A DNA stretch of 64,000 nucleotides from assembly GCA_038087875.1 (NCBI GenBank), contig JAXLNO010005869.1, positions 248,001 through 312,000 on the forward strand. The letters run 5' to 3'. Shown here in pieces: positions 22,121 through 64,000 of this stretch. The stretch is from Malacoraja senta (taxonomy: Eukaryota). Made by a program: the position numbers and the translations under genes. Each line of letters begins with the position of its first letter. Position 1 is the first letter of the stretch. The notes beneath the pieces are model-generated. The model made no database searches. It saw only the letters and a list, made by a program, of their open reading frames with translations, and was not told where the DNA came from.

Positions 22121-24202
22121 CAGCGGTTCTTAACCTGGGGGTCGTTTGGGTTTTTTCCAGGGGTCATGAAGGGGTTATAAATAACATATCAATTTGTTGA
22201 GCCCATTTTTAGAAACCTAACAAAGGTACATACCACACAGTATTTTGTTCGCGTATGCGTGTACGTATACGCACACGAACTGTGTGCGTTGCGAACCATG
22301 TCTGCCAAGAAGCGCACGTATAGTGAAGTATTTCTCAAGTTCGGCTTCACAAGCATTGTTCAAAAATCCGTGGTCAAGCCGCAATGTGTTATCTGTGCCA
22401 AGGTTTTGAGCCACGAGTGCATGAAGCCCAGCAAACTGAAAATCCATTTGGAGTCCACAGCGACCTGGCGGGGAAGGGCGTGGAAAAATGAAAAGAAGCC
22501 GCACTCAAGGGTTCCCGCATCGATTTGACGGGTCACTGCGCTCATCAAAATGAAGCAGCACTGGAGGCTTCATACCGGATTGCTAATTGAATCGCACAGA
22601 CTAAGAAACCTCACACCATCGGTGAAGAGCTTATCAAGTCAAGCCTTCTCGAAGCAGCGAAGTTGGTGCTGGGGGTACAGCAGTCAAACAAGTTCAGGCA
22701 GATTTCCCTTTCGAATGACACAGTCAAAAGTCGAATCTCGGATATGAGTAATGATATTCTGCTGCAAGTAATGAGCGCTGTGAAGAGCAGTCCAGTGTAT
22801 TCACTGCAACTGGACGAGTCAACAGATGTTGCCTCATGTTCCCAACTGCTAGTCTACGTTCGTTACCTCGACGGAGAAGCCATGAAGGAGGAGTACCAGT
22901 TCTCGGAGCCATTGGCCACTACCACTCGGGGAGAAGATGTGTTCAGAATGCTGGTAGCCCTCATCAAATATGAGCTTGGCTGGGAACGACTTGTCGGGGT
23001 GTGTACAGATAGGGCACCTTCCATGGTCGGAAGCAGATCCGGCCTCAAAGCCTTCGTGAAGGATGTCACTCCCCATGTCTCCTTTACCCACTGCATGATA
23101 CATCGCCATGCTTTAGCGATGAAGACTCTCCCTCCTGGTCTTCCAGAAGTGCTTTCAGATGTGGTGAAGATTGTGAACCACATCCGAGGGAGCACAACAA
23201 ACTCAAGAATCTTCAGAGCGATGTGTGAAGAAATGGGCGCCGATTTCACTGTTCTGATATTCCACACAGACGTGCGCTGGCTTTCGCGTGGTAAAGTTCT
23301 CAATTGCGTGATTCAACTTCGAGAGGAAATAGCGCTGTTCTTGCAGAGAGGGTGTACCAGAAGGAGAATCAGCTTCATGAAAAGATGCAGGATGAACTGT
23401 TCGTGATGAAGGTTGCTTACTTGGCTGAATTTTTCGCCGAGGTGAATTCCTTGAACTTGTCACTTCAAGGAAACCTCCCAATGCTACACACGGCTCATGA
23501 CAAAGTGGCAGCGTTCAGGAGGAAGATTCTTTTCTTTACCAGAGAAGAGTCCAGGACGGTGACATGACTATCTTCCCTGAGATGACGACACTCCTGGATG
23601 CTACACCAGATGCTGAATGCCACTTCCACGAGGAGATCTCAACCCACCTTCTGGCAATTAGCAAAGTCATCGAATGTTACTTCCCCGGACTGGACGACCG
23701 CTCTCGTGATGAGTGGATCGTCCGACCCTTTTCCGTTGAAGACGGTGCTATCAGCAATACTGACGTGGCTGCGAAGGTTGAATTTTACCGAATTCGTGAA
23801 AAGGCGCAACTCAAGAGTGACTTCATGGAACAAGAGCTCGCCACATTTTGGCTGAAAGTGAAGGACTGTCCTGTTGTTTCGCAGAGGACTCTGACCCTAT
23901 TGGCCCAGTCTCCCTCAACCTATCACTGTGAGGCTGGATTTTCAACCATGGTAGCTCTGAAAACGAAGGCACGCAATAGGCTTGTGATCAACGCTGACAT
24001 GAGGTGCTGCCTGTCGAGCAATCGTCCTCGTTTTGATCGCCTGATAGCTGCAAAGCAATTTCAGACATCCCATTGACTGAGTATTGGCAGACATGTTTTA
24101 ATAAATCGGGCTGTTTTTTTTTTCAATTTTTGTTTCGGGGTTCACGGCATTGACCAAGAATGTCTGATGGGGTCGTGGGGCCAAAAAGGTTAAGAACCAC
24201 TT
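22121..24202 (+). mobile_element. hAT DNA transposon, Buster/Charlie type, full length
   Basis: TIR CAGCGGTTCTTAACCT / AGGTTAAGAACCACTT; perfect 8-bp TSD TATTAGAC (22113-22120 and 24203-24210) with the central TA typical of Buster. Confidence 0.95.
22298..24076 (+). pseudogene. Frameshifted hAT transposase (ZBED5/ZBED8/SCAND3-like family)
   Basis: N-terminal zinc finger KPQCVICAKVLSHECMKPSKLKIH; YSLQLDESTD, VCTDRAPSM, HCMIHR, HTDVRWLSRG and STYHCEAGFS spread across several frames. Confidence 0.93.
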
Positions 24203-39267: not shown

Positions 39268-39640
39268 CTAAACTTGACAACTTCCTGTTTGCACTGTATA
39301 TTGATTTTAGATAAAACACTCACTTACGGCTGTAATTTTTGGCCATCTTACTCAGTCCCCCTCCGCTCATCAGGTGCAGAGAATTCTTCCCATCAATGAA
39401 AAATAAAAGTGTTATTAGTGTTTAAAAAAATGTTGAGAATCTCTCTCGTCAATCATGCCATGAAGGCCACGCCCCTTCCAGTGGGAGGGGGAGGGATTGT
39501 AAAACCCGGAAGTGTGGGTGTGGCTCTGTCTCTGCAAGATGGGGAGGGAGAGGTCATGACTCTGAGCTGTGAATCAACTGAACACACTGAATGTCTACTG
39601 AACTGTGAGTGTGGTGTTTTGTGTGGTTTTATGGTGGTTT

Positions 39641-40280
39641 CACCCTGCTTGAAATGCTATGAAACTGCATTTGAATGTGGTGGCCTTGCACCCTGCATGA
39701 AGGTATGAAATTGCATTTGAATTTGGTGGCCTTGCACCCGGCATGAAATGGTATGAAACTGTATTTGAATTTGGTGGCCTTGCACCCTGCATGAAATGGT
39801 ATGAAACTGCACTTGAATTTGGTGGCCTTGCACCCTGCTTGAAATGGTATAAAACTGCATTTGAATTTGGTGGCCTTGCACGCTGCATGAAATGGTATGA
39901 AACTGCACTTGAATTTGGTGGCCTTGCACCCTGCTTGAAGTGGTATGAAACAGCACTAGCATTTGGTGGCGCTACACCCTGCTTCAAGTGGTAGGAAACT
40001 GCACTTGAGTTTGGTGGCCCTGCACCCTGCTTGAAGTGGTATGAAACTGCACTTGAATTCGGTGGCCTTGCATCTTGCTTGAAATGGTCGGAAACGGCAC
40101 TTGAATTCGGTGGCCTTGCAACCTGCTTGAAGTGGTCAGAAACTGCACTTGAATTCGGTGGCCTTGCACCCTGCTTGAAGTGGTAGGAAACTGCACCTGA
40201 ATTTGATGGCCTTGCACCCTGCTTGAAGTGGTATGAAACTGCAATTGAATTTGGTGGCCTTGCACCCTGCTTGAAATGGA
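39641..40280. repeat. 48-bp minisatellite, about 13 copies
   Basis: Unit gaaactgcatttgaatttggtggccttgcaccctgcttgaaatggtat; the same unit occurs at about 60394-60830 and, inverted, 63660-63748. Confidence 0.95.
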
Positions 40281-41639
40281 ATTTCAAGGAATAGCTGTGT
40301 CAACTGCTAGCCCACCAGCCGTGAGTGAGCTGCCAGCACATCAGGCTTGAGTGACTGAGCTGTCACCCCAAGAATCCATTTGGCCCACAATGTCCATACT
40401 AGCCCTCTGGAAACCAGTCCCTTCAGCCCACAATACCACTCCAGAAAGCCCCCCCCCCTCCCCCCCCCCCACACTGGCCACCAATATTGGAATTGGTAGA
40501 GAGGTGGAATATTGCGTTGGGGGACCAGCCCTCCCGTGTGAACATGGGACCCAATGGATCCCACTTGGTCTAGTATGAATATAAAAACAGCTAAATGTTT
40601 TACCATGGAATAGAATTTCTAGGTTTGGAATTATTTGCCTCCATTTTGTTTGATTTAAGCCTAAGTAACGTAATTTATATCAAGAAGAAGTTAAACAAAA
40701 TCATTTTGGAAATCTTTCCAAATGGAAACTGCCATAAATAATAAGCGACGGTGATGTTAATATCACTGTCTGCAAAATCTGGAACTGCATCGAGATTGTA
40801 ACTAGTGGTCTGAAGCAACTGTTACTTAAGCAAAATATAACAAACTGTAAACAACAACAGTCTTTCTCTGCATTTATAAGGAAGTGATCTAATTGAGAAG
40901 ATCATGTTGCAAATGGAACAAAACATTTGTCTGGAACTGTTGACTGAAAGCAGAGACGGATGATTTTCTTGAAGTCACTCCAGCGCACTCATTAGTAAAA
41001 ATGTTTTCATGCTGGCTCGTGTCCACTTTTATCCCAGTTGTAGAGTTATGATGGTTTTAACATTGCATTAATTCACATTATCAAAAAAATCTCCAGCAAA
41101 TGAATGAATTATGTTTTGACAGTGCCTAAGCAACCAGTTAGGGTCTACAAATTCACTAAAAGGTATTCTGCAATCAAATTCTTCAAGCATTAATTGTATT
41201 TTCTATACAGAAATAGGCAGTGTGCAATATAATAAAATCCAGACAACGTATTAGAAACTCTTGCGTTTTAACACTGGGGATCCTGAGCTGTACTCCACTG
41301 CTGAAATGATATTGAATGAAAGATGCATCAGTTTTCTCTGGAGCCGTGTCTGTAGTTAGTAAATGTCATTTCTCTTCCTCCTCATCCTCCTGTCAGTTGC
41401 AAACAGAATCTGGTGTAACACTCTGTTGAGAGTTGGATCGTATTGTGTGCATCAGACCCCAAATACTTTACCAACCCTTTCTCGGGCACTTTGCTAGGAT
41501 CTTTCTCTTAGTGGTCAAAATTGCAAACATGTTTTTTGTTTCTTGCTCCTCAGTAACTACAAGAATCTAATAGAGTTGCTTGAGAGGTTCTGAAGAAAAC
41601 AGGATGCAGCACAGCTGGGTCTGTTAACTCCTCTGCCAC

Positions 41640-55109: not shown

Positions 55110-57700
55110 GAAAAAAGGAACCTGGGGTAGGGGTGACCTGTACAAAAGGGACGGGTTACACCTTAACTGGAGGGGAACCGACATTCTGGCAAGCAGATTT
55201 GCTAGGGCTACACGTGTGGGTTTAAACTAAATAGTGGTGGGGGGGGGGGATTGACAAATTGGGAGTATAAAGATAGAGTTGAAGGGGAAGTGGCTACAGG
55301 AAAAATTACAAAAGATTCTCGAATTAATGGGAAGGAAAGCTTGAGAATGGACAACAGAGTAAGGTCAGGGCCAATTGCGAGGGGGAAGTGAATACGGAGG
55401 TCAAAGTACTGTATATGAATGCGCGAAGTATAAGGAATAAAGTGGACGAGCTTGAAGCTCAGTTAGAAACTGGCAAGTATGATGTTGTGGGAATTACTGA
55501 GACTTGGCTGCAAGAGGGGCAGAGCTGGGAACTGAATATTCAAGGGTATACCTCCTATCGAAAAGACAGACAGGTGGGCAGAGGGGGTGGGGTTGCCCTG
55601 TTGGCGAGGAATTAAATTCAGTCCCTTGCAAGGGGTGACATTGAAAAAGGAGATGTGGAGTCAGTATGGATCGAACTAAGGAATTGTAAGGGTAAAAAGA
55701 CCCTAATGGGACTAATCTACAGGCCCCCAAACAGTAGCCTGGACATAGGGCGCAAGTTGAATCGGGAGTTAAAATTGGCATGTAGCAAAAGTAATGCTGT
55801 GGTTGTTATGGGAGATTTCAACATGCAGGTAGACTGGGAAAATCAGGTAGGTACTGGACCCCAAGAAAGGGACTTTGTAGAGTGCCCTCATGATGGATTC
55901 TTTGAACAGCTTGTAATGGAGCCTACCAGGGAGAAGGCAATTCTGGATTTAGTATTATGTAATGAACCGGATTTGATAAAGGATCTCGAGGTTAATGAGC
56001 CACTGGGAGGCGGTGACCATAACATGGTCAGGTTTAATCTATAATTGGAGATGGAGAAGATTAGATCGGAGGTGTCAGTGTTGCAGTTGAATAAAGGGGA
56101 CTATGGGGCCATGAGGGAGAAGCTGGCCAAAGTTGACTGGAAAGATACACTAGCAGGGATGACAGTGGAACAAAAGTGGCAGGTGTTTCTATGAATAATA
56201 CAGAAGGTGCAGGATCAGTTCATTCCTGGGAGGAAGAAAGATTCCAAGGGGAGAAAGGGACGACCATGGCTGACAAGGGACGTCAGGGACAGTATAAAAA
56301 TTAAAGCGAAGAAGTACAACGTAGCAAAGATGAGCGGGTAGCAAGAGGATGGGGTAATGTTTAAAGAACAACAGAAGATAACCAAAAAGACAATACGGGG
56401 AGAAAAGATGAGGTACGAAGGTAAGCTAGCCAAGAGTCAGCATGGATTTACGAAGGGGAACTCAAGCTTGACTAATCTTCTGGAATTTTTTGAAGATGTA
56501 ACTAGGAAAATGGACAAGGGAGAGCCAGTGGACTTTCAGAAAGCATTTGATAAGGTCCCACATAGCAGATTAGTGGGCAAAATTAGGGCACATGGTATTG
56601 AGGGTAGAGTGCTGACATGGATAGAGAAGTGTTTGGCAGACAGGAAACATAGAGTAGGGATTAACGGGTCCCTTTCAGAATGGCAGGCAGTGACTAGTGG
56701 GGTACCGCAAGGCTCGGTGCTAGGACCGCAGCTATTTACAATATACATCAATGATTTGGATGAAGGGATTCAAAGGGATTCAAATTTGCAGATGGGTGGC
56801 AGTGTGAACTGAGGAGGATGCTATGAGAATGCAGGGTGACTTGGACAGGTTGGGGGAGTGGGCAGATGCATGGCAGATGAAGTTTAATGCGGATAAATGT
56901 GAGGTTATCCACTTTGGTAGCAAAAACAGGAAGGCAGATTACTATCTAAATGGCGTCAAGTTGGGAAAAGGGGAAGTACAACGGGATCTGGGGGTCCTTG
57001 TACATCAGTCTATGAAAGTAAGCATGCAGGTACAGCAGGCAGTGAAGAAAGCGAATTGCATGTTGGCCTTTATAACAAGAGGAATTGAATATAGGAGCAA
57101 AGAGGTCCTTCTGCAGTTGTACAGAGCCCTAGTGAGACCACACCTGGAGTATTGTATGCAGTTTTGGTCCCCTAATTTGAGGAAGGACATTCTTGCTATT
57201 GAGGGAGTGCAGCGTAGGTTTACTGGGTTAATTCCCGGGATGGCGGGACTGTCATATGCTGAGAGAATGGAACAGCTGGGCTTGTACACTCTGGAGTTTA
57301 GAAGGATGAGAGGGCTTCTCATTGAAACATATAAGATTGTTAAGGGCTTGGATACACTAGAGGCAGGAAACATGTTCCCGATATTGGGGGAGTACAGAAC
57401 CAGGGGCCACAGTTTAAGAATAAGGAGTAAGCCATTTAGAACGGAGACGAGGAAACACTTTTTCTCACAGAGAGTGGTGAGTCTGTGGAATTCTCTGCCT
57501 CGGAGGGCGGTGGAGGCAGGTTCTCTGGATGCTTTCAAGAGAGAGCTAGATAGGGCTCTTAAAAATAGCGGAGTAAGGGGATATGGGGAGAAGGCAGGAA
57601 CGGGGTACTGATTGGGAATGATCAGCCATGATCACATTGAATGGCAGTGCTGGCTCGAAGGGCCAAATGGCCTATTCCTGCACCTATTGTCTATTGTGTA
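55110..57700 (+). mobile_element. CR1 LINE (ORF1 esterase C-terminus plus ORF2 APE and RT, internally deleted) nested in the hAT-like element
   Basis: WGRGDLYKRDGLHLN (SGNH DxxH); MNARSIRNK, GITETWL, MGDFN and GDHN; [11 protein letters not shown] and [10 protein letters not shown]; open C-terminal ORF 56823..57611; (ctattgt)n tail. Confidence 0.95.
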
Positions 57701-57720
57701 TTGAAATGAGGGGAAAAAAC

Positions 57721-57925
57721 GGCCAATCAACCGCTGTCTCTAAGGGGGTTACGTCCAATCACCGACCAGCTTCCCTTAAAATTCACGTCCAATCAGCCGC
57801 TGTCTCCAAGGGCATTGTGTCCAATCACATAATGCGCTGGTCACTCGGCAGCCAAACAGACGCTGTCTCCGAGGGGTGTTGTGGCCAATCACTAACCAGC
57901 TTCCCTTACTGAAGCAGAAGATGGC
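57721..57925 (+). promoter_or_regulatory. Phased CCAAT-box array plus YY1-like AAGATGGC; putative transposase promoter
   Basis: CCAAT at 57723, 57755, 57789, 57821 and 57885, with CCAAA at 57852; AAGATGGC at 57918-57925 contains an ATG at 57921. Confidence 0.5.
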
Positions 57926-58883
57926 TGCAGATGGGGAGTGGGAGAGAGAGAGAGCAGGAGAGAGAGAGAGAGAGCCAAAGAAAGAGAAAGAACAAGAAAG
58001 AACAAGATATAGAGAGATTCCAGCCCCTTAACGTTTCCTCAGGCCATGGGGAAACGTTGCTACCAAATGACTTTCAATGATAAACTTCTGGACAAATGCA
58101 AGAAAGCAGCTATGACATATAATACACAATCAACTGTATTACAAATACACAATAAGCAAGTTATGAATTATTGTACATTTACATGGGTATGACCGCACAT
58201 AAAAAATAAAAAGAATTTCAGAAAAATGGCACCGTGTAAAAATACCGATTTCCCCAGCAAAATACTGATTTTCAGGTACTACAATACTGAAATGCTCTGA
58301 CAAAACTTGGCAGATCTGAATATATCGCAATATTGGCAAACTACAAAAAAACCCACTTAAAATCCAGGAGCTAAGGCGGGCCCCTGGACCCCACCCGTAA
58401 TGGCGCTCGCACTCCGTCAACCCGCGCACTCAGAGTAAGATTTAACATTTTCAAATGTTGGCAGGTATGGATAATGGTGTTGGAGGCAGAATATAATCAA
58501 TAGATAGGAGTCTAAATTTGGAGTCCTTGTCGTCTAGGTTTTCCAGAGATCGGTTTAGGGACGTGGTGTCTGCTGTGGACCTGTTCTGATGGTAAGCAAA
58601 CTGCAGTGGATCTAGTCTGGCTGGAAGGCTGGAGTTGATGTGCTCCAACACCAGCCTCTCAAAGCACTTTATGATGGTGGATGTGAGAGCCAGGGAATGG
58701 AAGTCATTAAGGCACACTACCTTACTTTTCTTTAATCCCAGGATGATGGTGGTTGTCTTGAAGCAGGCGGGAACCTCAGAATGCAGTGGTGAGAGCTTAA
58801 TGATGTCTGAATACCTCCGCCGCTTTGTGACCCATTATAGTGCGCAAACCTCGCCACAATCTACATGTATCCATGTCATTGCC

Positions 58884-60073
58884 TTTGGTTTGAAAATGCA
58901 AAAGTGTTTTTTGGTTTGAAAATGCAAAAGTGTTTTTTGGTTTGAGAATGCAAAAGTTGCCTTGCCTAATTGAAAAGTTGGTTTGAGAATGTTAAAGTTG
59001 CCTTGCCTAATTGAAATGTTGGTTTGAGAATGCTAAAGTTTCCTTGCCTAATTGAAAAGTTGGTTTGAGAATGCTAAAGTTGCCTTGCCTAATTGAAAAG
59101 TTAGTCTGAGAATGCTAAAGTTGCCTTGCCTAATTGAAAAGTTGGTTTGAGAATGCTAAAGTTGCCTTGCCTAATTGAAAAGTTGGTTTGAGAATGATGG
59201 CAAGATGGCGGCGCCTGTTGGCAGCGGCCTCTGCAGTTCGTCTGTCTTTTTTTTCTCTTTGTCTGTTAAGTGGATGTCTTGGTTTTAGTTTTTATATTAT
59301 TTATAGCTGTGTATATGTGGGGGGCGGGGATGGGGGAAACTTTTTTTATCTCTTCCCTGTACGGGGACCCGACTTTTTCCTTTGTCGAGTCTCTGTTGTC
59401 GTTGGGCCTAACATTGGCGGCCTCCAACCGGAATCGACCTGGGGCTCTAGTCGCAGAGCCTGCGGACTCACCATCGCGGAGCTGGCTGACTTCGGAGTGC
59501 AGAGCGCTGTGGTGGCGCACGGCTGCGACCCGACTTCGGAGCTTCGAAGGCTCCGGCTGCAGGCCCTGTGGACGGTAACATCGGGAGCTCGCGGGTCCCT
59601 GGTGGGAGACCGCTTTTCGGAGCTCCTGCAATGGCAAACTTTGCCCACCCGAATCGAGGGGTTTAAATCGACCCGGAGCGGGGCCATACATCGCCCGGCG
59701 CGGCTTAAACGGCCGCGGGACTTACCATCGCCCACCGGGGGGCTCTAACATCTAACATCAGGAGCCTCAATTGGCTCGATGCAGCAGTTTGGCTGCTTGA
59801 CTGCGGGAGAGGAATGGGCACAGAGAACGGGGAAGAGATAAGACTTTTGCCTTCCATCACTGTGAGGAGGTGTTTGGGGATTCACTGTGATGGATGTTTG
59901 TGTGTAATTGTATGTTTTGGTTTTTCTGTTTGTATTATGACTGCAGAAAGGTAATTTTGTTTGAACTTATGTTCAAATGACAACGATTCTGATTCTATAA
60001 AGTTGGTTTGAGAATGCAAAAGTTGCCTTGCCTAATTGAAAAGTTGGTTTGAGAATGTCAAAGTTGCCTTGCC
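58884..60073. repeat. 26-bp then 41-bp minisatellite, interrupted by a retroposon
   Basis: ggtttga at 58887, 58913 and 58939 (26-bp period); tgaaa at 58971, 59012, 59053, 59094, 59135 and 59176 (41-bp period); the array resumes at about 59998. Confidence 0.92.
59196..59996 (+). mobile_element. GC-rich non-coding retroposon, probably a non-autonomous LINE derivative
   Basis: Starts gatggcaagatggcggcg and ends aaatgacaac(gattct)2; interrupts the 41-bp array. Confidence 0.6.
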
Positions 60074-60074
60074 G

Positions 60075-61075
60075 TCTATATAATTAAAAGTCTAATCTTG
60101 ACCACTTCCTGTTTGCGCTGTATATTGATTTTAGGAAAAATGCTATCACGTACGGCTGTGACTTTTGGCCATCTTACTCGGAGTCCCCTCCGCTCATCAG
60201 GTGCCGAGGATTTTTCCCATCGATGAAAAATAAAAGAGTTATTAGTGTTTAAAAAATGTTGAGATTCTCTCTCCTGTCAATCACGCCATGAAGGCCACGC
60301 CCCTTCAGGTGGGAAGGACTATAAAACCTGGAAGTTTGGGCGTGGCAGTCTATGCAAGAAGGGGGAGGGAGAGGTCATGACTCTCTGTCTTTAGTGGCCT
60401 TGCACCCTGCTTGAAATGGTATGAAACTGCATTTGAATTTGGTGGCCTTGCACCCTGCTTGAAATGGTAGGAAACTGCACTCGAATTTAGTGGCCTTGCA
60501 GGCTGCTTGAAATGGTAGGAAACTGCATTCGAATTTGGTGGCCTTGCACCCTGCTTGAAGTGGTAGGAAACTACACTTGAATTTGGTGGCCTTGCAGGCG
60601 GCTTCTTCTTCTTGCCTATGGCGTACACAGCCTAACGTTGTAGGACAACTTGTTCTATTTGATCTTATTTGATTGTGCACGCCGGGTTGATTGCATTCGT
60701 CGAAACGGGGCGGACCACGTGAAGGTTGCAATCTTCCACCCTGCAGGCTGCTTGAAATGGTAGGAAACTGCACTCGAATTTGGTGGCCTTGCAGCCTGCT
60801 TGAAGTGGTATGACACTGCACTTGAATTTGCCTTGAGTTAGTGAGCTGCCAGCACACCAGGCTTGAGTGACTGAGCTGCCAGCCCAAGAATCCATTCGAC
60901 CCACAGTGTCCATACAAGCCCTCTGGAAACCAGTCCCTTCAGAATACAACACCCATACTAGCGCTCCAGAAAGCCCCCCCCCCACACTGGCCACCAATAT
61001 TGGAATTGGTGAAGAGGTGGAATATTACGTTGGGGGACCATCCCTCCCGTGTGAAGCTGGGACCCAACGGTCTAG
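60075..61075 (+). mobile_element. Non-autonomous Helitron (copy C) with 48-bp array and a small (AAG)n-tailed retroposon 3' end at about 60605-60740
   Basis: TCTATATAATTAAAAGTCTAATCTTGACCACTTCC start; CTAG|T at 61072-61075; right arm of the hairpin deleted; collinear with 39268-40573. Confidence 0.85.
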
Positions 61076-61509
61076 TTATTCTATTAAATGTGATCTTGAG
61101 AGGACATAATATTTTCTGTGGATTTCATAACACAACAATGATAAAAAGATCTTTGTTTTGATTGCACCTACCAACATGCATACATTATTATATTACAGTT
61201 AATATGTACCGAGGGCAAATTTTTGTTCCAATTCCCAAATACTTTTACATTGAAGTTCCCCGCTCACATCTGGCAGTGATCTCTGTCTGAACTGGGGTCC
61301 ACAGAGCATTTTTGAAAGTTGGGAGGCTGAGCGATCACTGGCCTTGGGGGTACCTGGTGAGGTAGTGGAGCAACCAAGTGGTGGGAGGGGGGTGTTTCCC
61401 CTCACACAGTAGGGACATTTTGAAAGTTGATATTTTAAAATCATGTTTTAGTGCATTGTAGAAGTATGATTTCAATGTTTTTTGTTTGATGTATTTTTAA
61501 GAGGTAACT

Positions 61510-62150
61510 TTTTAAGGGATAACTTTTTCCACACAAAGGGTGGTGGGTGTATGGAACAAGCTGCCAGAGGAGGTAGTTGAGGCAGGGACTATCCCAACAT
61601 TTAAGAAACAGTTCAACTGATACATGGATAGGACAGGTTTGGAGGGATATGGACCAAAAACAGGTAGTGTAGCTGGGACATGTTGGCGGGTGTGGGCAAG
61701 TTCGGCCGAAGGGCCTGTTTTCACACTGTATCACTCTCTGACTACATTATACCTCCACCATGCATGAATGCTTCAAAATCAAGTGGTTGAGTTTTATTGC
61801 CATATACTCAAGCATAGAAAATAGGTGCAGGAATAGGCCATTCAGCCCTTCGAGCCAGCACTGCCATTCAATACGATCATGGCTGTTCATCTAAAATCAG
61901 TACCTCTTTCCTGATTCTTCCCCATATCCCTTGATTTCGCTTGCCCCAAGAGCTAGATGTAACTCTCTCTTGAACACATCCAGTGAATTGGCCTCCACTG
62001 CCTTCTGTGGCAGAGAATTCCACAGATTCACAACTTTCTGCGTGAAGAAAGTTTGTCCTCATCTCAGTCCTAACTGGACAACCCTTAATTTTTAAACTGT
62101 GACCCCTGGTTCTGAACACCCCCAACATCGGGAACATTTTTCCTGCAGTT
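61510..62150. mobile_element. Two CR1 3' fragments (about 61510-61742 plus; 61813-62150 minus)
   Basis: Similar to 860-1090 and 32370-32700 respectively. Confidence 0.85.
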
Positions 62151-62240
62151 ACATTAAGTGAAAATCTAGCAGGCAAGCAGGATGCTTTCTCCAACCAATT
62201 TGAAGGCTACTATCGTCCACCGTTTCTACTTGGTACTTAC

Positions 62241-62564
62241 TTCCAGCAGCCACTGGTTGTCCTCCAGGATGCACCGAGCCGCAGCCTGATCCATGCCGGT
62301 TACCTGGGCGAATTCGGCACAGAGACTCTCACGGCAGCGGCGCAACGCTTTCGAGGCCACCGACGGCCCGGGGCTCTTGAACTGAGGCTGCTCCATGGCT
62401 GGAGTGCAAGCCTCTGACGGCCCTGAGGCTTGCACTGAGGCTGCTCCATGGCCGGAGCTGCAGCGAGTGACTCGCCAGTCCGGCAAACGCTCGCCACCCC
62501 GGCAAACACTCGCCAGCTCCGGCTCCCTGTCCGCATCTGTCCCCACCACTGCTTCTGCTTCCAT
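62241..62564 (-). pseudogene. TDP2: Orphan TDP2-like exon 1 (N-terminal UBA-like domain)
   Basis: RRCRESLCAEFAQVTGMDQAAARCILEDNQWLLE aligns with recalled TDP2 KKRRLLCVEFASVASCDAAVAQCFLAENDWEME; phase-0 donor GTAAGT at 62240-62235; no catalytic-domain exons recognised in the window. Confidence 0.75.
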
Positions 62565-62594
62565 CCCTCCCTCAGCCCTGGCTCATGCAGTTTT

Positions 62595-62719
62595 GAATTT
62601 TTCATTGATCACATAATTTCTCACGACAGAGCGTGAGAAATTTGTGATCAGCGTGAGAGCGTGAGTATTTGGCCAAATGCGTGATTCTCACGCTCGATGC
62701 GTGAGAGTTAGCAGCCCTG
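62595..62719 (-). mobile_element. hAT-type transposon terminus with subterminal repeats, abutting the TDP2-like exon
   Basis: Minus strand begins CAGGGCTGCTAACTCTCACGC at 62719; GCGTGAG/CTCACG motifs repeated in both orientations; directly adjoins a cut CR1 fragment (about 62720-63020). Confidence 0.7.
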
Positions 62720-63369
62720 CTATGCCTCTCATAATTTTATAAATTTCTTCCTGATCCCCCCCACCCCCCCAGCCTCTGATGCTCCAGAGGAAACAATCCA
62801 TGTTTCTCCAACCTCTCTTTTTAGTTAATACTCTCCAATTTAGGTAATATCCTGATGAACCTCTTCTGCACGCTCTCCAAAGTTTTATACAACTGTACCA
62901 ATGATGGCAAGTATGTTACAAACCTTCTGTACCATCCCATTTACTTGTGTTGCCACTTTCAGTGAGCATTGGACTTTCACTGCAAGATCCCTCTACTTCA
63001 ATGTTCCCAAGAGTTCTGCCTCAGTAAATTGACTTGGAGACTACTATCGAATTTCTCTAAGTGTCAAACTCTTGTCTAGTAGGTCAAAATGACTCATCAT
63101 TCTAATTAGGAAAATGAAATAGTTGAGGCATGTCCTTCACCTACAACAGTACTGATATCTTTAAAAAAAAAAAATTCTTGCTACTGAGTATTTCCATTAA
63201 CTTTAATGGACATTAATACATCAAAGTGATATGTGAGACATTTAAAAGGTGCCCAACCCTGGAAGGGAACTATTTCCAGTGATGAGTATTTCCATGTGCT
63301 TACTGGGTTCAGAACTTGGCAAGCAAAATTAAGCTAGCCATCCTTGTGTCGTGAGCTTTATATTGTACA

Positions 63370-64000
63370 CTAGACTAAGTGGGACCCATTGGGTCCCAGC
63401 TTCACACAGGAGGGCTGGTCCCCTAACACAATATTCCACCTCTCCACCAATTTCAAGATTACTGGCCAGTGTGGAGGGGGGGGGGGCTTTCTGGAGCACT
63501 AGTATGAGTGTTGTGGGCTGAAGGGATTGGTTTCCAGAGGGCTAGTATGGACATTGTGGGCCGAATGGATTCTTGGGCTAACAGCTCAGTCACTCAAGCC
63601 TGGTGTGCTGGCAGCTCACTCACGGCTGGTGGGCTGGCAGTTGACTCACGGCTATTCCTTGAAATGCCACTTCAAGCAGGGTGCAAGGCCACCAAACTCG
63701 AGTGCAGTTCCCTGCCACTTCAAGCAGGGTTCAAGGCCACCAAACTCCTGCAAACCAACCACATTTGCCTTTGCAAACCAACCACATTTGCCTTTGCAAA
63801 CCAACCACATTTGCCTTTGCAAATTTCATTTTCAAACCACATTAAGGGCACTCACAGGTCAGTAAAACCACACTTACAGTTTAGTAGACATGTGTTCAGT
63901 TGATTCATAGCTCAGACAGAGAGCTGTGACCTCTCGCTCCCCCATCTTGCAGCGACTGAGGCACGTCCACACTTCCGGGTTTAATAGCCACTCCCCCCTC
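63370..64000 (-). mobile_element. Non-autonomous Helitron (copy D), 3' part; runs off the window
   Basis: CTAG at 63370-63373 with flanking T on the minus strand; palindrome TGGGACCCA-T-TGGGTCCCA at 63380-63398; about two 48-bp units and a 23-bp repeat at 63751, 63774 and 63797. Confidence 0.88.

Follow-up and report, generated by a model that had tools for sequence, protein, structure and literature searches.

The interval 61076-62719 on the minus strand of the window (the whole 64-kb stretch of Malacoraja senta DNA that was analysed) is, with high confidence, a dead, 3'-truncated copy of a high-copy, non-autonomous DNA transposon with terminal inverted repeats (TIRs), a 'Pack-TIR', which carries a block of the host gene TDP2. 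Alignments with the little skate TDP2 locus (L057) demonstrate, at the level of sequence, that the 5' end of TDP2, exon 1 and the start of intron 1 were captured as DNA by a TIR transposon. The copy and its flank consist of the following parts:

62707..62719, minus strand: 5' terminal inverted repeat CAGGGCTGCTAAC, with one mismatch to the family's CAGGGCTGCCAAC; this boundary is common to about 25 copies
62573..62706, minus strand: transposon-derived subterminal region, with GCGTGAG/CTCACGC repeats clustered at 62631-62705
62397..62572, minus strand: captured TDP2 5' flank or 5'UTR-like DNA; copy positions 148-291 align to L057 9898-10021
62241..62396, minus strand: captured TDP2 exon 1, 52 codons, encoding the N-terminal half of the UBA-like domain; intact here
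62235..62240, minus strand: GTAAGT donor of TDP2 intron 1, phase 0, at the same position as the little skate exon 1/exon 2 boundary
61515..62234, minus strand: captured 5' part of TDP2 intron 1, aligned contiguously to L057 up to 10905
61076..61514, minus strand: internal transposon sequence without TDP2 homology; the copy is truncated at 61076
62720..62913, minus strand: flanking old LINE ORF2-tail fragment, outside the element (tblastn E=2e-9), with its ...YKIMRGI motif cut at 62720

The terminus CAGGGCTG... is located exactly at 62719, and about 25 other copies end alike, with unrelated flanks. Immediately outside it the translated LINE ORF2 tail breaks off, which agrees with the first-pass annotation that the terminus cuts a LINE fragment, and this match places the insertion of the element in the old ORF2-tail fragment at 62720. 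The LINE tail is visible at the protein level only; at the DNA level, the flank 62720-63330 showed no similarity to other LINE copies. The terminus had also been described as rich in GCGTGAG subterminal repeats, and five of the nine GCGTGAG matches in the 64-kb window are indeed found within 62631-62705, while none of 100 shuffles reached nine matches. Compared with the little skate TDP2 locus, the subterminal region (62573..62706) has 45% mismatch, which is the random level, and hence no homology.

The captured 5' flank (62397..62572) is GC-rich and contains a 19-bp tandem repeat (62470-62523) and an upstream ATG (62564); a 53-bp duplication of the ATG region has its upstream half here. The G+C content and CpG observed/expected ratio are 65% and 0.69 in the captured 5' part, versus 43.5% and 0.43 in the window. 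A start codon about 155 bp inside the terminus had been annotated, which is correct for the upstream ATG at 62564, whereas the TDP2-homologous ATG at 62396 lies 324 bp inside. Within the captured intron, an old LINE 3' fragment (about 61810-62147) occupies the same place as in little skate TDP2 intron 1.

The window copy corresponds to positions 1-1693 of a 2701-bp element copy, and other copies extend past window positions 61254 and 61076. Relative to a 3.4-kb type, it has a roughly 600-bp deletion at 61254-61256. The remaining 1 kb of the element, including the second TIR, is absent anywhere in the window, and a search of the window for a second TIR found none; the copy has neither a second TIR nor a TSD because it is truncated. 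An inverted repeat of about 235 bp (60837-61070 and 63386-63623, 88-92% complementary) brackets the truncated element together with its LINE flank, and the inner end of its left arm abuts the truncation point at 61076. Tandem repeats of 48 bp are located outside each arm (60500-60830 and 63664-63747) and occur also at 39640-40287. The arms may belong to two copies of a different, satellite-bearing repeat or may delimit a larger element.

On the minus strand, the open exon begins with the ATG (62396), ends at 62241 and adjoins GTAAGT. It was assigned above the cut-off to Pfam UBA_4 (E=3.6e-6, a domain fragment); among solved structures it matches the human TDP2 UBA domain best (6q00, E=1.3e-4), with p47 coming next (E=1.6). 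These matches support the earlier description of a GC-rich exon with a TDP2-type UBA-like domain and a GTAAGT donor; a best match to a different UBA protein, which would have spoken against that description, was not obtained. The window exon shares 83% identity with residues 1-54 of little skate TDP2. An open frame of 221 aa from one copy matched, through its UBA part only, Leucoraja erinacea TDP2 (P0005; 360 aa, UBA_4 plus Exo_endo_phos) with 81% identity, and the N-terminus of little skate TDP2 retrieved Rhinoraja longicauda TDP2. A protein search with the 53-aa exon, too short a query for this purpose, returned one short ORF from another copy (P0001), low-complexity noise and no TDP2.

At the DNA level, window 61515-62572 is colinear with L057 9898-10905 over about 1 kb, with 80-83% identity. 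The captured block takes in roughly 100 bp of sequence preceding the ATG, exon 1 with its donor, and about 740-750 bp of intron 1 with the shared LINE fragment. TDP2 homology begins about 170-173 bp inside the TIR, the first ~170 bp of the element having none, and no TIR is found at the little skate TDP2 locus. With an intron and a LINE inside the colinear homology and a TDP2 locus free of the TIR, the suggestion of DNA-level, Pack-TIR-style capture made in the first-pass annotation was borne out. The 40 best-scoring copies aligned to L057 9898-10260 with 88-90% identity, and 36 of them begin at query base 1, which fits a single capture breakpoint. (A 4.2-kb little skate query against the genome was swamped by an unrelated high-copy repeat; narrower queries worked.)

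In little skate TDP2, intron 1 follows codon 54 in phase 0, and exon 2 (RALNSYFE...) completes the UBA fold; the phase-0 intron that had been stated for this position therefore has the same boundary in little skate. A 4HBT-domain gene is located upstream of little skate TDP2, head to head, as would be expected of ACOT13, near which TDP2 had been said to lie. Residues 1-54 are all of TDP2 that the 64-kb window holds: no other TDP2 exon was found, as had been noted from the open reading frames, and exons 2-7 (the rest of the UBA domain and Exo_endo_phos), which a genuine TDP2 gene would have downstream of exon 1, are missing below 62240.

Complete copies elsewhere are 1.2-3.5 kb long (full-size ones 2.7-3.5 kb) and have a perfect 13-bp TIR, CAGGGCTGCCAAC ... 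GTTGGCAGCCCTG. Among six complete copies, the TSD is 6 bp in four (one of them imperfect) and 7 bp in two; the five perfect TSDs (GTACAG, TATTCA, AAGTAT, TTGTATA, and CATTTTG) are all different. The element has every defining feature of a Pack-TIR: TIRs at both ends in complete copies (the window copy retains the 5' TIR only), copy-specific TSDs as proof of transposition, a host-gene fragment whose parental locus is transposon-free (the little skate TDP2 locus), capture at the DNA level with an intron and not as a retrocopy (donor, ~740 bp of intron 1 and the LINE fragment), and no transposase of its own. In the remaining 3' 2 kb of the element, no long ORF was found, and the ten longest open segments yielded no Pfam family above the cut-off.

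The superfamily is less clear than the structure. Typical hAT elements have an 8-bp TSD and a TIR that begins YARNG. In the skate element the TSDs are 6-7 bp, in a small sample of six complete copies, and the short TIR begins CAGGG, with the GCGTGAG cluster as subterminal repeats. Of the hAT-type label proposed earlier, the CAGGG... TIR and the subterminal repeats thus stand, while the TSD length and the lack of a transposase partner do not bear it out, and hAT membership is plausible from those two features only. The search example of the Repbase paper contains hAT families annotated with a 7-bp TSD (PMC4455052). No autonomous copy was found among roughly 400 kb of retrieved genome sequence, and no transposase ORF adjoins any of seven long copies, so we infer both the superfamily and the mobilisation in trans. 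Elsewhere in the window, two ORFs (247 and 170 aa) at 22663-24076 on the plus strand resemble remnants of hAT/Buster-type transposase by eye; they have no Pfam hit at E<=0.01 and no CAGGGCTGCCAAC-type TIR nearby. Two other classes were considered and rejected. Dada elements have 6-7-bp TSDs, no TIRs, and insert at specific small-RNA genes (PMC3706591); despite the similar TSD length, this superfamily was ruled out by the perfect 13-bp TIR and the unrelated flanks, since Dada elements lack TIRs and are target-specific. Capture by a Helitron, which has neither TIR nor TSD, was ruled out because both are present.

The family is large. Whole-genome counts of 35-mers with up to three mismatches located the exon-end/donor junction at 1,100 sites and the 5' terminus at 2,341, and reversed-pattern controls gave zero, which confirms the genome-wide amplification that had been considered possible. 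A search of the assembly with 62160-62719, as proposed at first pass, found many dispersed copies that share the 62719 boundary, the complete ones with TIR and TSDs. The 560-bp query around the exon yielded 44 scored matches (71-90% identity) of about 3,000 first-look candidates. In a sample of 30 copies, 25 matched the exon pattern and 20 the terminus pattern; genome-wide, 5' termini exceed exon junctions by about 2:1, which is opposite to the ratio predicted from the sample, indicating that many elements with the 5' terminus probably lack the exon. The parent family, or an autonomous element, could be among such relatives without the TDP2 block.

The 53-bp duplication of the ATG region had been taken as a sign of decay. 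It is real, and because of it the MEQPQ peptide is read in two frames, but it is present in 18 of 30 copies and so does not represent decay of the window copy; since it is absent from little skate TDP2, it serves as a subfamily marker. Several other variants were observed. Some copies show an expansion of the 19-20-bp repeat of the captured TDP2 5'UTR, with many units, for example at 3534-4199 of L044 (C1:254550000-254557000) and at about 4750-5550 of L043 (C1:306145000-306153000). Long open frames with the UBA exon (221-365 aa, including one of 254) were considered as intronless genes and rejected as artefacts of these expansions. Exon-1 matches fall into length classes of 147, 156, 162, 165, 174, and 180 bp (examples are C1:295531551-295531730, C1:222618325-222618504, and C77:67295-67474); the 180-bp class is as long as exon 1 of TDP2 itself in this genome and could represent either a subfamily that arose early or duplicates derived from the gene. 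A further exon-1 match lies 17 kb beyond the window end. Another element copy was found in ENA assembly ERZ25070917 (L058 3835-4646 of a 4646-bp contig; 5' TIR CAGAGCTGCCAAC...), 90% identical to one copy of the Malacoraja senta genome, and the element was also matched at >=90% by contigs from runs that bear at least three different organism labels.

In the captured part, the 30 sampled copies diverge by 3-5% from their consensus. Nonsynonymous and synonymous changes stand in a ratio of 1.83, versus 2.23 expected under neutrality with the family's own mutation spectrum, and frameshifts or stops interrupt 16 of the 30 exons, leaving 14 intact. Such roughly neutral evolution makes the exon most likely a passenger. 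With neither the second half of the UBA domain nor any of the catalytic domain, the captured exon cannot give rise to TDP2. On these grounds the copies of the family look like decaying passengers and not working genes.

According to another interpretation, the >1,000-copy mobile TDP2 5' cassette, whether from an old capture or after horizontal spread, includes some copies that may drive chimeric transcripts or UBA fusions, or small RNAs that regulate TDP2; we regard this as improbable. A cassette that is more than a passenger, its CpG-rich 5' region, ATG and donor serving as mobile promoter plus first exon and producing chimeric transcripts, UBA-fusions with host genes or small RNAs that feed back on TDP2, is quite improbable. 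It would account for the donor GT being kept in all 30 copies (27 GTAAGT, and three GTAGGT as in little skate), for the open exon that 142 of the 150 best protein matches have, and for the G+C and CpG values that the captured 5' part still retains. Precedents exist as well, namely transcribed chimeric Pack-TIRs and a Helitron carrying the NUBPL promoter and first exon (PMC8277862, PMC4224331). The near-neutral exon and the broken state of more than half of the sampled copies argue against it, and the expression data do so weakly. In polyA RNA-seq under a closely related organism label, depth over the exon was about 3-8x at >=90% likeness with all copies summed, and no joint or loose end at 62241 was seen among the RNA-seq matches listed; reads on 57600-63500 derive mostly from LINE and SINE repeats. 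Likewise weakly, annotated proteins of 122-630 aa that contain the exon comprise only two TDP2 proteins and no chimera.

The genome's own TDP2, which had been suggested as a target for alignment, was located away from the window, as two tandem paralogs on contig C19:4603402-4713263 (minus strand). Compared with little skate, exons 2-7 are 81-97% identical in copy A and 57-93% in the more diverged downstream copy B. Candidate first exons (C19:4712337-4712516 and C19:4646439-4646618) lie 10 kb and 5 kb upstream of their exon 2s on the same strand; both matches have 60 codons, compared with 52 codons for the element and 54 for little skate. Upstream little skate sequence from beyond the captured block matches uniquely, just upstream of both C19 first exons and with 83-84% identity. 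Transfer therefore went from host to transposon, because the gene loci carry orthologous sequence beyond the border of the block and because the UBA N-terminus is ancestral to TDP2, as its match to the human structure indicates.

The same evidence bears on whether the UBA exon might be the first exon of the transposon's own transposase, retained after internal deletion, as internal-deletion derivatives usually retain that exon. The TDP2 homology runs ~100 bp upstream of the exon and ~740 bp into intron 1 with the same LINE, the real gene splices exon 1 to an exon 2 that completes the UBA domain, and the TDP2 upstream region continues past the block only at the real loci, so that this origin is hardly credible. 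That the window holds a genuine gene or a segmentally duplicated fragment of a TDP2 paralog, for which the intact exon and consensus donor could be cited, has a negligible probability in view of more than 1,000 dispersed copies with TIRs and copy-specific TSDs, the absence of any other TDP2 exon from the window and the complete TDP2 genes on C19.

For the Pack-TIR, a single acquisition of the TDP2 block by one transposon copy would have come first, probably through template switching during repair of a double-strand break or gap, or at a stalled replication fork. Gap-filling and fork-switching models of gene capture have been discussed for animal Pack-TIRs (PMC8277862), and capture by template switching is the mechanism proposed for both Pack-MULEs and animal multicopy Pack-TIRs. 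Mobilisation of the chimera would then have depended on a transposase supplied in trans by an autonomous, probably hAT-like relative; this enzyme would recognise the TIR and the GCGTGAG subterminal repeats and yield the 6-7-bp TSDs. As for its age, the captured block, at 88-90%, resembles little skate TDP2 at least as closely as the host's own exon 1 seems to, so that the capture might be old and date from near the skate-lineage split, or the chimera might have spread horizontally from one skate to another.

Plants offer well-documented examples of gene-fragment capture by cut-and-paste transposons. The process has looked rare in animals and nearly always single-copy; here, the 5' end of TDP2, a housekeeping DNA-repair gene, has been copied more than 1,000 times in a cartilaginous fish, and TIR elements are evidently able to disperse start-codon and splice-donor cassettes extensively through a vertebrate genome. 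For skate gene annotation, the family is a warning of more than 1,000 false 'TDP2-like' first exons, and it also offers a natural system for asking if chimeric genes arise from cassettes of this kind or if the parental gene is silenced in response to them. A literature search for TDP2, transposon and skate together found no paper.

A survey of 100 animal genomes reported 370 Pack-TIRs, only four of which were multicopy (Tan et al. 2021, PMC8277862). The skate element resembles the animal multicopy Pack-TIRs in being a non-autonomous TIR element with a host gene fragment between its ends, in its unlinked and transposon-free parental gene, and in TSDs that differ between copies. It differs in having at least 1,100 copies with the block, far above the reported 3-5; the skate family is a further Pack-TIR, with a copy number that is unusually high for an animal TIR element. 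Pack-hAT-N8_XT of Xenopus tropicalis carries 291 bp of the CAPSL 5'UTR and has been amplified to three chromosomes (PMC8277862). Both captured regions are GC-rich and come from the 5' end of a gene; unlike that of Pack-hAT-N8_XT, the skate block is larger (~1 kb) and includes a coding exon, a donor and an intron, and the skate element has 6-7-bp TSDs and only a putative hAT affiliation.

With plant Pack-MULEs and Pack-TYPE elements, the skate family shares the DNA-level transduplication of gene fragments and introns in non-autonomous TIR elements (PMC8903248). It differs in host kingdom and in superfamily, with a CAGGG TIR, a TSD of 6-7 bp instead of 9-10 bp, and a single cargo fragment. Most individual Pack-MULE families have far fewer copies than the skate family. 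The Helitron HelibatN3 of Myotis lucifugus has as its cargo the promoter and 5'UTR of NUBPL together with the first exon and a portion of intron 1 (Pritham and Feschotte 2007, as cited in PMC4224331). HelibatN3 and the skate element both carry the upstream region, first exon and intron 1 start of a housekeeping gene in about a thousand copies, whereas HelibatN3 is a rolling-circle element without TIR or TSD, and the skate element is of the cut-and-paste type, with a 13-bp TIR and 6-7-bp TSDs. The HelibatN3 NUBPL Helitron is the nearest analogue of the skate family in both cargo and scale, and the only vertebrate parallel that could be documented.
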